Position numbers and translations under genes: made by a program
Notes under the pieces: generated by a model
Seen by the model: the letters and a program-made list of their open reading frames with translations, nothing else
What the model was told of the DNA's origin: nothing
Database searches by the model: none
Source of the DNA: Octopus sinensis
Taxonomy: Eukaryota
DNA length: 15,069 nucleotides
NCBI RefSeq assembly: GCF_006345805.1
Contig: NW_021825602.1
Coordinates: 1 to 15,069 of the forward strand
Reading direction: 5' to 3'
Shown: positions 4,248-15,069 of the stretch, one piece after another
Layout of the letters: each line of letters starts with the position of its first letter
Numbering within the stretch: the first letter of the stretch is position 1

Positions 4248-4264
4248 AAAAAAATATAAAAATC

Positions 4265-4613
4265 AACAGAATGAGATAAAAAAAAACATGGCTGTGAATG
4301 ATTTCAGAGCATTTATAAAGAGGTCTTACAGCTGTTTCCGGGATATTTTATATATCCCTTCATCAGAGACGGTGCGAGAAAATGGTTCAGCAGTAGTTAT
4401 TCTAGAGAAGAAATGAAATACAGTGTAGAGTGGAGGGATGGAAAACAGACGTGAGATACGTAAGGATATTGTATCTGCAGTTCCATTATTTAAGCAGAAT
4501 GGTATGCATATGAGTTTCCTGTACCTTGTGTGTAAGTTCCAATGGTAAGAGCTTCTCTTTATAAATGTTATGAAATCTTTCACAGCCTTGGAATTTTTTT
4601 ATCTCATTCTGTT
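4265..4613 (-). mobile_element. Probable Penelope-like retroelement remnant with an inverted terminal duplication
   Basis: Arms 4265-4329 and 4545-4613 are imperfect inverted repeats enclosing a hammerhead motif. The Penelope assignment rests on the known PLE-hammerhead association, as no RT or GIY-YIG sequence is present. Confidence 0.6.
4323..4370 (-). ncRNA. Minimal type I hammerhead ribozyme motif (HHR-1)
   Basis: Minus strand GUCU CUGAUGA A GGGAUAU-AUAAA-AUAUCCC G GAAA C-AGCU-G UA|AGAC. Intact core, 4-bp helix I, 7-bp helix II, palindromic helix III ACAGCUGU and a GUA triplet with predicted cut between 4327 and 4326. Confidence 0.78.
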
Positions 4614-4615
4614 AA

Positions 4616-4620
<5 letters not shown>

Positions 4621-4690
<70 letters not shown>
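4621..4690. repeat. (CT)n then (CTAT)n microsatellite
   Basis: Read directly. Confidence 0.97.
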
Positions 4691-4691
<1 letters not shown>

Positions 4692-4792
4692 CAGTGCGTA
4701 ACTGGTACTTATTTAATCGATCCCGACAGGATGAAAGGCAAAGTCGACCTCGGCGGAATTTGAACTCAGAACGTAACGGCAGACGGAATACC
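4691..4792 (-). mobile_element. SINE family A internal fragment
   Basis: Near-identical to 4873-4975 of the adjacent full copy. Confidence 0.88.
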
Positions 4793-5028
4793 TATTTTTT
4801 TACTACCCACAAGGGGCTAAACACAGAGAAGACAAACAAGGACAGACAAAGGGATTAAGTCGATTATATCGACCCCAGTGCGTAACTGGTATTTATTTAA
4901 TCGATCCCCGAAAGGATGAAAGGCAAAATCGACCTCGGCGGAATTTGAACTCAGAACGTAACGGCAGATGAAATACAGCTACGCATTTCGCCCGGCGTGC
5001 TAGCGTTTCTGCCAGCTCACCACCGCCT
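4793..5028 (-). mobile_element. SINE family A1 (full length)
   Basis: Reverse complement is colinear with 8517-8748 end to end. Confidence 0.93.
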
Positions 5029-5619
5029 TTTTTGTTGTCAATAATGTGCTCTGACTGCCTGCATCTATGTCAGTATGTTTGTCTCTCCTACCATCAACTG
5101 GGAGCCATCAATTGTTTTCAGACCAAACTGTAGCGACAAAATTTGATTATAACGAGAAACCCCTATTCCAGCCCAACTAATACAATTAAAAACATTGCAG
5201 AAATCAGATTCACCTATTTACGGTTTTTTGTATGTAAATTTTCTATGTATGTTGAAACTGATTTCGCCATTTCTAAAACTCGTGTTTGTCTTTACAATTT
5301 GAATTCTATTTATTTATTTGGCATATTTTCGATTTAAAAAAAATTAAAAACAAAGATTATTAAGTTATAAAGATTTTAGAAATATGGCAACGGTGCCTTT
5401 GTCAGAGACATTCGTCTTGTTTCATGAAATTAAATGGCTTCCAGCGGTGGGAATTGAAATCGCGACGCGTTCCCAAATGGCAGTGAACTAACCTCAGGAT
5501 GTAGGGCACTTGCCATAAATTAATCTTTTACTTTAGATTAAAAGAAATGATTTAATTTTAGTAAAAATACATTAATAGAATATATACAATATGTGTATAC
5601 AATTATATTACAATTTATA

Positions 5620-5934: not shown

Positions 5935-5940
5935 CATATA

Positions 5941-6440
5941 CTAGCAGTATCGCCCGGCGTTGCTCGGGTTTGTTTCGACCCTTTAGAATTTGAATTTTTG
6001 AAAAGTAAAATTTTTGCATTATGTCGCTTGTTATTCTCTTTAAGTGGACATTTTTCTGGTTGAAATACACCGAAAAATGGAGACACAGCAGTCAAAGAAT
6101 CGTAAAAAATAGGGATTTTCGTAGAAAAAAAGCACCATTTTGATGCAAATAATTTTTGGTGTTAACATGGTCCGATTTGAATTTTTTCTTCTATGGAAGG
6201 AAAAGCAAGCCTTCGTCTATCAGCCTCTCAATTTTGGTCAACTTGCGCCGCAGGGGGTTTTTAGAGTCAGGTATTTGACTGCTATTTCGGCATGGTGGTG
6301 TCTCTCAGATACCCTTATTTATAGTTATAAAAAAATTACTACCTTTGTATGGTATTTATTCCTATGCTGGTTACTTGATAATATCGATATTTAAAATATC
6401 GATATTATCCTTATTTATAAATTTATATATATATATATGA
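5941..6440 (-). mobile_element. Non-autonomous Helitron, copy 1
   Basis: The minus-strand 3' end has the GC hairpin CCCGAGCAACGCCGGG (5968-5953) and CTAG|T at 5941. The putative 5' end is A|TC-ATATAT at 6440. 5941-6255 is shared with copy 2. The 5' boundary is less certain. Confidence 0.78.
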
Positions 6441-8168: not shown

Positions 8169-8516
8169 AATGTAAATATATGTTTGTATATGTATGCATA
8201 TATGTCAGTTTTCTGTAACATAACAGAATACGGTGTTCCCTGAGGATCCGTTGTAGCGACGCATTCAATTAGAAATAGCAGTCAGATGTACCTTAAATCA
8301 CAGTCTTCTGTTTCACAATAAACGAAGGCACTTTAGAGGATGTATTCGCAGCTAGTTTTAAAATCAAATAAAATAAAACGAGAGGCTCACCGCTGGAATG
8401 TCTTTTGTCATTGGCTTACTCCTTTAGGTATTACCTGGATCCAGGTAACAACAGCAAACACAAGAAGAACAACAACAACCACAACAACAACAGAATAATA
8501 ATACAAGAAACAAGGA

Positions 8517-8748
8517 AGGCGGCGAGCTGGCAGAAACGTTAGCACGTCGGGTGAGATGCGTAGCCGTATTTCATCTGCCGTTACGTTCTGAGTTCAAATT
8601 CCGCCGAGGTCGACTTTGTCTTTCATCCTTTCGGGGTCAATAAATTAAGTATCAGTTACGCACTGGGATCGATGTAATTGACTTAATACCTTTGTCTGTC
8701 CTTGTTTGTCCCCTCTGTGTTTAGCCCCTTGTGGGTAATAAAGAAATA
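8517..8748 (+). mobile_element. SINE family A1, full length with a 17-bp target-site duplication
   Basis: TSD AATACAAGAAACAAGGA at 8500-8516 and 8749-8765, A box TGGCAGAAACGT and B box GAGTTCAAATTCC. The central domain resembles, from memory, the Meta/MESC SINE domain (unverified). Confidence 0.96.
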
Positions 8749-9250: not shown

Positions 9251-9466
9251 ATAACCCTATCAGGCACAAGGTCTGGAATTTTGTGGGGGGAGGGGTTAAG
9301 TCGATTACATGGACCTCCAGTGGACTGGTACTTAATTAATATCGACCCCGAAAGAATGAAAGGCAAAGTCGACCTCGGCGAAATTTGAACTCAGAACGTA
9401 AGGACCGTCGAAAAACTGCTAAGCATTTTGCTTAGCGCGCTAAGAATTCTGCCAGCTCACTGCCTT
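9251..9466 (-). mobile_element. SINE family A2 (full length)
   Basis: Colinear with 868-1080. Confidence 0.9.
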
Positions 9467-9467
9467 C

Positions 9468-9565: not shown

Positions 9566-9750
9566 GATAATCCTTTTTAGTAAAGGTACAAGGCCTGAAA
9601 TTTGGTGAATGGAGACTAATCAATTACATCGACTCCGAAATGACAAAAGGCAAAGTCAACCTTGGCGGAATTTGAACTCAGAACGTAGAGACGGACGAAA
9701 TGCCGCTAAGCATGATTCCTGGCGTGCTAACGATTCTGCCAGCTCGCCGC
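9566..9750 (-). mobile_element. SINE family A2 with a ~31-nt internal deletion
   Basis: Colinear with 868-1080 but lacks the segment between the two ATCGAC repeats. Confidence 0.88.
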
Positions 9751-11194: not shown

Positions 11195-11715
11195 TTTTCG
11201 ATGTGTGCGAGCGTGTGTGTGTGTGTTTGTGTGTCTGTTTGTGTCTGTTTGTGTCTGTTTGTGTGTGTTTGTGTGTGTGTATGTGTTTGTGTGTGTGTTT
11301 GTGTCTGTTTGTGTAGTGTTTCTGTGTGTGTTTGTTTATGTGTGTGTATGTGTGTGTGTGTTTGTGTGTTTGTTTGTGTAGTGTGTGTATTTGTGTATGT
11401 GTGTGTTTGTGTGTTTGTTTGTGTGTGTTTGTGTGTGTGTATGTGTTTGTGTGTGTGTGTTTGTGTGTGTATGTGTTTGTTTGTGTGTGTATGTGTTTGT
11501 TTGTGTGTGTGTGTTTGTGTGTGTGTGTTTGTGTGTTTGTTTATGTGTCTGTGTTTGCGTGCGTGCTTGTGTATATATATGCGCGCGCGTGCATTTGTGT
11601 GTGTTTTTTCTGTATGTGTGTGTGCATTTGAGTGTTTGTCTGCATGTGTGCGCGTGTGTGTGCGTGTGTGCGTGCATGTGTATTTGTGTGTATTTGCGTG
11701 CGCGCGCGTGTGTAT
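11195..11715. repeat. Long imperfect (GT)n/(GTTT)n satellite
   Basis: Read directly. It produces the V/C and H/T ORFs. Confidence 0.97.
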
Positions 11716-12472: not shown

Positions 12473-12484
12473 CAATATGTAGAA

Positions 12485-12880
12485 CTAACAGTATCGCCCG
12501 GCGTTGCTCGGTTTTGTTTCGACCCTTTAGAATTGGAATTTTTGAAAAGTAAAAATTTTGCATTATGTAGCTTGTTATTCTCTTTAAGTGAACATTTTTC
12601 TCGTTGAAATACACTGAAAAATGGCGACACAGCAGTAAAAAAATCGTAAAAAATAGGGATTTTCATAGAAAAAAAAGCACCTTTTTGATGTAAATAATTT
12701 TTGGTGTTAACATGGTCCGATTTGACTTTTTTCATCTACGAAAGGAAGAGCAAGCCTTCTTCTATCATACTCTCAATTTTGGTCAACTTGTACTGCAGGG
12801 TCTCGGAGGGGAAGTGTTAGTTGAAGGCTACCAAACCTGCCACACGCACACAGACAACTTCAGCTTTATATAGAGAGAGA
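12485..12880 (-). mobile_element. Non-autonomous Helitron, copy 2 (complete, 396 bp)
   Basis: Minus strand A|TC start at 12880 (TCTCTCTCTATATAAAGCTGAAGTTGTC), 3' hairpin at 12512-12497, TTAG|T end at 12485 (CTAG variant), AT target and no TSD. Confidence 0.85.
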
Positions 12881-13224: not shown

Positions 13225-13715
13225 CACACATTAACACACACAATGGCACTCACACACACGCATACACATACATACGTACATACATATACATACATACACG
13301 GAAACATACACACACACATTTATACACACACATACATGCATACATTGCATACATACACACATACATATATACACACTCTCATACATGCATACATATATGC
13401 ATACATACACACATATATATACACACGCACTCACATACATATATACACACACGCATAAATACACACGTACGTACGTATACATACGTACATCTATACATAT
13501 ACACACGCATATGTACACACATATATACATACACACACATACATAGTACATACACACATATTTACATACACATACATACACATGTGCACATATACACACA
13601 TATATACACACGTGCACATATACACACATACATACACACGTGCACATATACACACATACATACCTACCTAACTACACACACATACATACACACGCATACA
13701 TACATGCATGCACAC
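13225..13715. repeat. Long imperfect (CA/TA)n satellite
   Basis: Read directly. It produces the 213-aa H/T/Y ORF. Confidence 0.97.
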
Positions 13716-13721
13716 CTGAGC

Positions 13722-14032
13722 TGTCACTCCGTCGGTTACGACGACGAGTGAATCTGTTAATCCAATCAACGGAACAGCCTGCTCATGAAATTACTGTGCA
13801 AGTGGCTGAGCACTCCACAGACACGCATACAGACGTAGTTCACAGGAAGATTCAGCGTGAGATACTGAGACAAGGTAGGCCCATTAGATTACAAGTACAA
13901 CCTGTTTTTGATAGCCGAGGGGACTGGAGCAATAAAGTGCTTTGCAAGGCCACAATGCGCCCGAGAATCGAACTCGTGACCTTACAATTGTGAGCCGGAC
14001 ACCCTAACCACTAAGCCACCATTCTTCGCTCC
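13722..14032 (-). mobile_element. tRNA-derived SINE, family C variant
   Basis: Minus strand GTGGCTTAGTGGTTAGGG (A box) and GAGTTCGATTCTC (B box). The 3' region GTGTCTGTGGAGTGCTCAGCCACTT...CGTCGTCGTAACCGACGGAGTG is shared with 3860-4247. Confidence 0.85.
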
Positions 14033-14049
14033 CCCCCCCGCATATTCTC

Positions 14050-14255
14050 ATATTGTTGATGTCATAAGAAACATTGAGAGAATGTGGAAAAATTTCTTGG
14101 GGGATGGTGACACTTGAAGCAGATAAAGCTATAAATAACAGTGTGTAAATATTGGGTTTAAAAGCTCTTTAGATGAAAAAACCCCAAAGGCTGCACGTTC
14201 GACTCGAACCCACATCTTCTGTAAACGTGATAAACGCATTTACCTATCCCTCATC
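14050..14255 (-). mobile_element. Old tRNA-derived element, family E, copy X
   Basis: Minus strand TTACAGAAGATGTGGGTTCGAGTCGAACGTGCAGCCTTTGGGGTTTTTCATC aligns with plus 14408-14460. The left boundary is uncertain. Confidence 0.5.
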
Positions 14256-14372
14256 GAGTCTTTATTCTTCCCTACGATAATTGTACATTGTTGACGTCAT
14301 AGGAACCTTCCAGAGAATTGGAATAATTCTGTTTTGGAACGTCAATAAAAGCGGGTTGAGATAAATCGAAGA

Positions 14373-14567
14373 ATTGCTTTGGTGCAATGGTAGAACATCT
14401 GTCATGATTACAGCAGATGTCGGTTCGAGTCCCAGGGGCAGCCTTCGATGTTTTCTATCCAAATGGTTTGAAGATGCCTGGCAAGTGTTTTGATCTAAAA
14501 CCGTGGAAAACATTGCCGTTCTCTAGAAATAATATATTTCTAAATCACTCAGAGAAATTTATGCAGC
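14373..14567 (+). mobile_element. Old tRNA-derived element, family E, copy Y (decayed tRNA-like head 14373-14443)
   Basis: A box TGGTGCAATGG (14380-14390) and B box GGTTCGAGTCC (14422-14432). The acceptor stem pairs mostly through G-U wobbles, the T stem has two mismatches and there is no valid anticodon loop, so it is not a functional tRNA. Confidence 0.55.
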
Positions 14568-14947
14568 AACAGCGCGATAAAGCGATAGGATGTTGTCAAC
14601 TTATTGTGACAGTCCCATGAAATGGAAGAATGCTACTGTTATTTAGCCCTAGGAAACACCGTTTATTTTTGGACTTGACACTTTTCCTGTGTCCTAATGT
14701 TTTCAAAGGCATCGACAGCTATCAAGCCATGATACACCAGTCTGATGATGAGCAATGACTCTGAAACTAGTCTCTGGATGCTGGCTTTGCTGGGTGGGGA
14801 TGCTTGTCTGCACTTTGAAAACATAAGGACTCAGGAAATGCTTCAAGTCCAACAGGAAACGGTGTTTCCTAGGGCTAAATAACAGTAGCATTCTTCCCTT
14901 TTATGGGGACTTTCACATTGACAACACACTATCACTTTATTGCCGTT
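14568..14947. mobile_element. Foldback element with ~135-bp inverted arms and a hammerhead motif at the apex (probable Penelope-like derivative)
   Basis: Arms ~14568-14708 and ~14812-14947, including a perfect 41-bp inverted match (14624-14664 vs 14857-14897). Weaker complementarity continues inward to the ribozyme helix I. Confidence 0.8.
14737..14777 (+). ncRNA. Minimal type I hammerhead ribozyme motif (HHR-2)
   Basis: CCAGU CUGAUGA U GAG-CAAUGA-CUC U GAAA CUAG UC|UCUGG. Intact core, helix I CCAG/CUGG with a U.U first pair, 3-bp helix II, palindromic ACUAGU helix III and a GUC triplet with predicted cut after 14772. Confidence 0.65.
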
Positions 14948-15069
14948 CTATGTTTGGACGAAACTCGTCTCATATTGATCGCCGCTCTTCTCCCTCCATC
15001 GCAGAAAATGCAAACAGAAAACAAACTTAACTTTGCGATGTGTGTGTATGAGAAAGAGAGAGAGAGAGA

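Follow-up and report, generated by a model that had tools for sequence, protein, structure and literature searches.

The window analysed here, a stretch of 15,069 nucleotides from Octopus sinensis, consists of non-coding DNA that is rich in microsatellites and SINEs, a repeat landscape reminiscent of cephalopod genomes; it includes 34 tandem-repeat rows and numerous dispersed repeat families, and none of its ORFs is meaningful. At positions 14568-14947 this non-coding DNA forms a strong foldback of 380 bp (the first unit), which carries a hammerhead-like ribozyme motif between its arms, and a second unit that also carries such a motif lies on the minus strand at 4260-4618. The features of the two units are the following.

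14568..14717, minus strand: left arm, read as the shorter of two copies, inverted and 5'-truncated, which lacks a ribozyme and has its 3' terminus at 14568
14718..14804, plus strand: asymmetric centre, read as unique to the longer copy; it holds the ribozyme motif, and the putative copy junction lies within 14718-14736
14737..14777, plus strand: minimal type I hammerhead-like motif, read from the sequence and matched by a structure descriptor
14748..14882, plus strand: short ORF of 44 codons plus stop, listed as 14745..14882, with a second M at 14748
14805..14947, plus strand: right arm, read as that segment of the longer copy which follows the ribozyme and runs to the 3' end of the copy near 14947
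4260..4618, minus strand: second unit of about 360 bp, read as an inverted short copy (4618-4555) and a longer copy (4554-4260)
4323..4370, minus strand: second hammerhead-like motif, a descriptor match; the neighbouring arm begins at 4322

There are no long ORFs in the window, and a Pfam search of 10 ORF pieces found no remnant of a reverse transcriptase or GIY-YIG endonuclease in it. None of the 10 window ORFs was found in the protein collection, no homologue was found for either the 65-aa minus-strand piece across the first ribozyme or the 85-aa ORF of the second unit, and peptide searches showed no homology to any Penelope-like element (PLE). DNA pattern scans with an arm 22-mer and the core pattern gave no match in metagenome contigs or viral contigs. 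By its coding content, the first unit would be at most a truncated or non-autonomous PLE derivative, not an autonomous element. For a 49-aa piece downstream of the ribozyme, an exhaustive HMMER search returned a sole match, the 1833-aa ankyrin-repeat/SET-type protein P0001, which we judged spurious: the match has 31% identity and is made up of 13 stretches along an artefactually repeated segment. In P0001 an ankyrin-type segment of about 41 aa is repeated identically some 15 times, giving an inflated E-value, and this repeat is probably an assembly or annotation artefact.

Several other repeats lie in the same window. A near-perfect hairpin at 5792-5863/5867-5938, with 72-nt arms that are 87.5% complementary and 3 nt between them, abuts a dispersed repeat (5940-6255) that recurs without the hairpin at 12484-12800 (316 bp, 92%). 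Another dispersed repeat, of about 130-250 bp and present in at least five copies on both strands at 80-91% (917-1079, 4691-5033, 8509-8748, 9340-9467 and 9628-9750), often lies beside (ATT)n or (TC)n and behaves like a SINE. Two long arrays, at 11202-11691 and 13254-13715 (about 450-490 bp), consist of degenerate (TG)n-like and (ACAT)n-like repeats; each is in part the complement of the other, and they are the main source of GC and AT skew in the window. A head-to-head inverted pair of tRNA-like sequences occupies 14165-14465, some 100 nt upstream of the foldback (arms 14178-14230/14402-14454, 53 nt, 79%), with a T-arm box GGTTCGAGTCC and with both members ending in TTTT; ARAGORN detects no tRNA there or elsewhere in the window, and the sole Rfam match of this segment, to a long-hairpin miRNA, is meaningless.

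Arms and fold of the foldback at 14568-14947

An earlier reading of this DNA made from the letters alone (the sequence-only reading) had described a 380-bp foldback with a 41-bp perfect arm match, and this description is borne out by both alignment and folding. The paired arms, 14574-14717 and 14943-14805, are 84% identical over 146 columns of a gapped alignment with four indel blocks. A repeat search returns an arm pair of 95 nt at 89% (14614-14708/14813-14907) and an outer pair of 26 nt at 85% (14574-14599/14918-14943), and the longest perfect inverted match, of 41 bp, joins 14624-14664 to 14857-14897. Folded as RNA, 14568-14947 reaches -203.6 kcal/mol, compared with -95 +/- 4.9 for shuffles (z = -22).

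The inverted repeat stops at 14717/14805, and an 87-nt asymmetric centre (14718-14804) separates the arms. It had been proposed that helix I of the ribozyme continues into the arms through AAGCCA/TGGCTT. This pairing does exist, but the complementarity between 14718-14741 and 14773-14804 to which it belongs is equalled or beaten by 21% of shuffles, and because the inner pairing is not above chance we treat the whole 87-nt stretch as asymmetric. The 104-nt spacer of the first unit, when folded alone, does no better than shuffles (z = 0.33). The MFE fold of the full-length unit keeps helices I and II at its tip. The 15 mismatches between the arms comprise three that would be G.U pairs in the plus-strand RNA (the ribozyme strand), three that would be G.U pairs in the minus-strand RNA and nine of the transversion type; these differences look like the neutral decay of a DNA duplication, not the conservation of an RNA helix.

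When flanking direct repeats were checked, no target-site duplication abutted the ends of the first unit, in agreement with the earlier reading, or those of the second. A search of 14000-15069 revealed no direct or tandem repeat at or beside the first unit, and no further copy of it occurs elsewhere in the window. Nor is a 30-40-bp tail recognisable at either of its ends, because both outer ends coincide.

Hammerhead motifs of the two units

The motif in the first unit reads CCAG-U-CUGAUGA-U-GAG-CAAUGA-CUC-U-GAAA-CUAG-U-C / U-CUGG, with C17 at 14772. The sequence agrees with the earlier description of the loop as CUGAUGA-helix II-GAAA-CUAG-UC with a predicted cut after 14772, that is, between 14772 and 14773, after C17. 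The conserved hammerhead core, which comprises C3 to A9, G12-A-A, an A15.1-U16.1 pair and H17 at the cut site, is present (CUGAUGA 14742-14748, GAAA 14763-66, U14771 and C14772). Helix I has 4 bp (CCAG 14737-14740/CUGG 14774-14777), with U14741 opposite U14773 next to the core, and helix II has 3 bp (GAG 14750-52/CUC 14759-61) with the loop CAAUGA and a preserved G10.1-C11.1 pair. Two extra nucleotides flank helix II: U14749 after A9 and U14762 between C11.1 and G12. The place of helix III is taken by CUAG (14767-70), a pseudo-helix within the palindrome ACUAGU (GAAAC-UA-GUC).

Judged by its letters, the first hammerhead is of the dimer-dependent kind, in which a palindrome replaces helix III, and action as a dimer is therefore implied. 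On its own, one copy could be cut only with the help of a second ribozyme, because helix III, consisting of A-U and C-G around a 2-nt UA, cannot close; the earlier expectation that cleavage would yield a long duplex with defined ends is thus unlikely to hold. This copy is probably inactive, since it is single and is weakened by the 3-bp helix II and the U.U beside the core, and such a decayed look is to be expected because the arms have themselves drifted to 84% identity. The earlier suggestion that U.U pairs at 1.1/2.1 and 10.1/11.1 may inactivate the copy is retained in part. The copy does look impaired, with a U.U beside the core in helix I, but the supposed U.U at 10.1/11.1 appears better read as the usual PLE extra nucleotide after A9, followed by a kept G10.1-C11.1 and then by an unusual extra U before G12. 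The AUG at 14748 is formed by A9, the extra U and G10.1, with the cut site 25 nt from its A, and the ORF that it opens (14748..14882) may be a remnant of the start of the element's ORF, or a coincidence.

The second motif, on the minus strand, reads GUCU-CUGAUGA-A-GGGAUAU-AUAAA-AUAUCCC-G-GAAA-CAGCUG-U-A / AGAC. Its parts run from GUCU (4370-67) through CUGAUGA (4366-60), the extra A (4359), the extra G (4339) and GAAA (4338-35) to CAGCUG (4334-29), U (4328), A17 (4327) and AGAC (4326-23), with a predicted cut between 4327 and 4326. Helix II, GGGAUAU/AUAUCCC with the loop AUAAA, has 7 bp, helix I has 4 bp and is fully paired, and the predicted dimer fold uses an intermolecular helix formed by the palindrome ACAGCUGU. 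On these features the second motif appears to fit the description of PLE minimal hammerheads better than the first.

To assess whether such motifs could arise by chance, we used a structure descriptor consisting of CUGAUGA, 0-1 nt, a helix II of at least 3 bp, 0-1 nt and GAAA, followed by a 0-6-nt palindrome, U, H and a helix I of at least 4 bp. The descriptor was written to accept the first motif, and its expectation per 15-kb window is 0.002 against an order-1 background and 0.0008 against an order-0 background (300 Mb). It matches the window twice, at 14737-14777 (+) and 4370-4323 (-), and the latter is the real test of the descriptor because it was not used in designing it. Both motifs share one layout (CUGAUGA, one nucleotide, a G...C helix II, one nucleotide, GAAA, palindrome, U, H and a 4-bp helix I), and for the exact arrangement, in which single nucleotides flank a G...C-closed helix II on both sides, the expectation is 0.0001 per window. 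Such hammerhead motifs are enriched in the window and are not accidents. In both motifs the extra nucleotide before G12 (U in the first, G in the second) leads to a U.U or A.G stacked under helix II. PMC4209133 does not list such an additional nucleotide between C11.1 and G12, and we found no description of it in the literature.

Rfam, applied to the whole window at the gathering score, returned nothing. At E <= 10, with short stretches as queries (e.g. 76 nt), neither motif matches Hammerhead_1, Hammerhead_3, Hammerhead_II, HH9 or HH10, models that may or may not cover minimal PLE variants; the minimal PLE hammerheads of PMC4209133 were found by a structure descriptor (RNAmotif). C/D-box snoRNA look-alikes (AUGAUGA...CUGA), which score 12-15 bits against cut-offs of 36-40, were rejected because their boxes lie only about 10 nt apart and their E-values are around 1.

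The second unit has 63-nt inverted ends, composed of the arm pairs 4278-4322/4555-4599 (45 nt, 84%) and 4260-4284/4594-4618 (25 nt, 92%), and it adjoins a (GA)n microsatellite at 4620-4690. Comparison of the first unit with the second, and with the rest of the window, gives similarity at the shuffle level and nothing beyond the core. The two units nevertheless have a plan in common: the ribozyme lies upstream of a 3'-terminal segment, and this segment is repeated in inverted orientation at the far end. In both, the shorter half has no ribozyme; that of the longer half lies upstream of the outer end, at a distance of 175 nt in the first unit and of 67 nt in the second. The second-unit ribozyme abuts one arm and has about 190 nt of unique sequence on its other side, and an apical ribozyme is therefore not a common feature of the two units.

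Origin of the inverted units

From the arrangement of arms and ribozyme, we consider it probable that 14568-14947 is an old, decayed PLE insertion, or a short non-coding element mobilised by one, in which two 5'-truncated copies stand head-to-head. Two copies of one terminal segment, both truncated at the 5' end, would have been joined head-to-head: a shorter inverted copy (14568-14717) with its 3' end to the left, and a longer direct copy (about 14718-14947) with its 3' end to the right, which would carry the minimal type I hammerhead (14737-77). The ribozyme would lie in the asymmetric centre because only the longer copy reaches far enough in the 5' direction to include it. The inverted arms would then be a by-product of integration, not an RNA hairpin selected for function, and in a source element with two ribozymes the hammerhead would pair with a second copy and cut after C17. 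The insertion signature of PLEs, an inverted, shorter, 5'-truncated copy head-to-head with a hammerhead-bearing direct copy, is found in both units. A mild coincidence under this two-copy model is that the copy junction falls 0-19 nt upstream of the first ribozyme. We infer from these features a PLE origin, an insertion history with two copies and a loss of activity. The head-to-head inverted truncated arrangement is already described for PLEs, and the first unit is most likely not a new type of element.

The sequence-only reading had instead proposed a dedicated non-autonomous ribozyme-foldback retroelement, whose transcript would be one long hairpin capped by a ribozyme. The consensus of such an element would be arm, hammerhead and arm, and its RNA would perhaps feed dsRNA or small-RNA pathways, or form a rod as retrozyme circles do. 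It would account for the near-central place of the ribozyme within the 87-nt centre and for the MFE fold, which keeps helices I and II at its tip. The circular RNAs of metazoan retrozymes are described as highly self-paired (PMC7761336), and one window holds two units of 360-380 bp with inverted ends and one ribozyme each. However, the ribozyme of the second unit is not apical and its arms span only 63 nt, pair-preserving differences between the first-unit arms are not in excess, helix I is not extended into the arms above chance, and the spacer is not unusually structured. In addition, a single ribozyme of the dimer type cannot release the unit, and the word "inverted" is absent from the metazoan retrozyme paper (PMC7229834). 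We therefore regard such an element as unlikely. What stands of the proposal is the retroelement-derived look of the unit, which lacks a target-site duplication, and its PLE-type ribozyme; what does not is the capped hairpin as the design of the element, which the non-apical second ribozyme, the unbiased arm mismatches and the unextended helix I argue against.

A distinctly unlikely explanation is a relic of a foldback-type MITE or DNA transposon that bears a hammerhead-like motif by chance, or as a captured PLE fragment. In its favour, the first unit is of typical MITE size, lacks coding capacity and has long terminal inverted repeats that extend to its two ends. On the other hand, the arms take up 144 of the 380 nt and are not short conserved termini, no further copy occurs in the window, the probability of the motif by chance is about 1e-3 per window, and its rare layout recurs in a second unit with inverted ends. 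Both units lack a target-site duplication, and for this reason the first appears retroelement-derived rather than a MITE.

It is also quite unlikely that a tandem hammerhead repeat of a non-LTR retrozyme left the first unit behind as a single monomer, self-complementary through a rod-like circular-RNA fold: although its size lies within the reported 150-400 bp, its hammerhead is of type I, dispersed monomeric derivatives are reported to be common and retrozymes have been proposed to come from PLE pLTRs (bioRxiv 10.64898/2026.07.22.740005; PMC7229834), there is no tandem or direct repeat at or beside it and only one motif per unit, the motif is of the minimal PLE kind and not a canonical type I with loop-loop contacts (and fails Rfam Hammerhead_1), the unit ends opposite the ribozyme and not at the cleavage site, and the indels between the arms of the inverted repeat in the DNA suggest a pair of copies, not a single folded unit. 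We would also give little credence to small PLE-dependent elements of a lineage-specific class whose long inverted arms enclose a variant hammerhead with an extra U.U or A.G between A9.G12 and G10.1-C11.1; were this class real, its transcripts would be long hairpins of dsRNA or rod-like RNAs, and an encounter of two copies would be required for their processing.

If the two units are head-to-head PLE copies, as we favour, some retroelement relics may be booked as DNA transposons, because a structure-based pipeline will see a MITE where two Penelope-type ends form a short inverted pair. The earlier warning that standard pipelines would mislabel this unit as a DNA transposon or MITE is likely to be correct on the same grounds. 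An embedded minimal hammerhead would offer a cheap diagnostic that separates PLE end pairs from MITEs. Moreover, should hammerheads whose helix II is flanked by an extra nucleotide on both sides prove common in this genome, PLE-associated hammerheads would tolerate more core variation than is known so far.

Comparison with known hammerheads and inverted-repeat elements

Minimal type I hammerhead ribozymes of Penelope-like elements are reportedly the subject of work by Lunse, Weinberg and Breaker from 2017. In the minimal PLE hammerheads analysed by Cervera and de la Pena (2014; PMC4209133), a nucleotide lies between A9 and 10.1, G10.1-C11.1 is conserved, helix II has 6-8 bp and helix I 4-5 bp; positions 15.2-16.2 are palindromic, and the Drosophila virilis type carries a palindromic insert of 2 nt. 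These ribozymes act as dimers and are weak in vitro. The same authors report pairs of them on opposite strands, 100-700 bp apart, as well as many solitary ones, which they interpret as truncated PLEs. The motifs described here resemble them in the CUGAUGA...GAAA core, the nucleotide after A9, G10.1-C11.1, the 4-bp helix I, the palindrome with a 2-nt insert and the solitary position in non-coding DNA. They differ in that both have one more nucleotide between C11.1 and G12. In the first, helix II is only 3 bp long, compared with 6-8 bp, and helix I contains a U.U beside the core; the second, with a helix II of 7 bp, is like the PLE motifs in the length of this helix.

The arrangement of copies can likewise be set beside known PLE insertions, in which an inverted, shorter, 5'-truncated copy or pLTR stands head-to-head with a direct one (PMC8557442, PMC3846280). 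The pLTRs measure about 180-220 bp including the first ORF codons, target-site duplications are of 8-10 bp or are missing, and solo pLTRs occur (Arkhipova et al. 2013, PMC3846280); PLEs also favour microsatellite targets (Craig et al. 2021, PMC8557442). Here, too, the 3' ends point outward and the inverted copy is the shorter, the two copies of the first unit (about 150 and 230 bp) compare with the 180-220 bp of a pLTR, target-site duplications are missing, as they can be in PLE insertions, a microsatellite adjoins the second unit, and the ribozyme is located close to the 3' end of its unit. In contrast to such insertions, the first unit has no ORF body, no direct pLTR repeat and no recognisable 30-40-bp tail, and the likeness is one of architecture, not of sequence homology.

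Short non-coding elements of other kinds share part of these properties. The metazoan non-LTR retrozymes (Cervera and de la Pena 2020, PMC7229834) are similar in being non-coding and about 300-400 bp long, with a type I hammerhead, a self-paired RNA and a likely dependence on a PLE enzyme; unlike them, the first unit is not tandem and has a single minimal ribozyme, and inverted DNA arms are not described for retrozymes. MITEs and foldback DNA transposons are also short and non-coding, with long terminal inverted repeats, but the first unit has no target-site duplication and carries internally a ribozyme motif of a retroelement class.

A parallel for the position of the short ORF comes from the Poseidon element of Anolis (PAc), whose enzyme cleaves and extends both target strands, with reverse transcription starting 111-118 bp into the ORF (PMC11167929); this activity would supply biochemical grounds for the insertion structure of PLEs. 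The PAc ORF has its start at stem II, and the hammerhead is cut 26 bp further downstream (PMC11167929); the AUG of the first unit similarly lies at stem II, 25 nt before the cut site. Among cephalopods themselves, genomes reportedly hold Penelope elements, and that of the giant squid has 235 Hammerhead_1 matches (PMC6962438).
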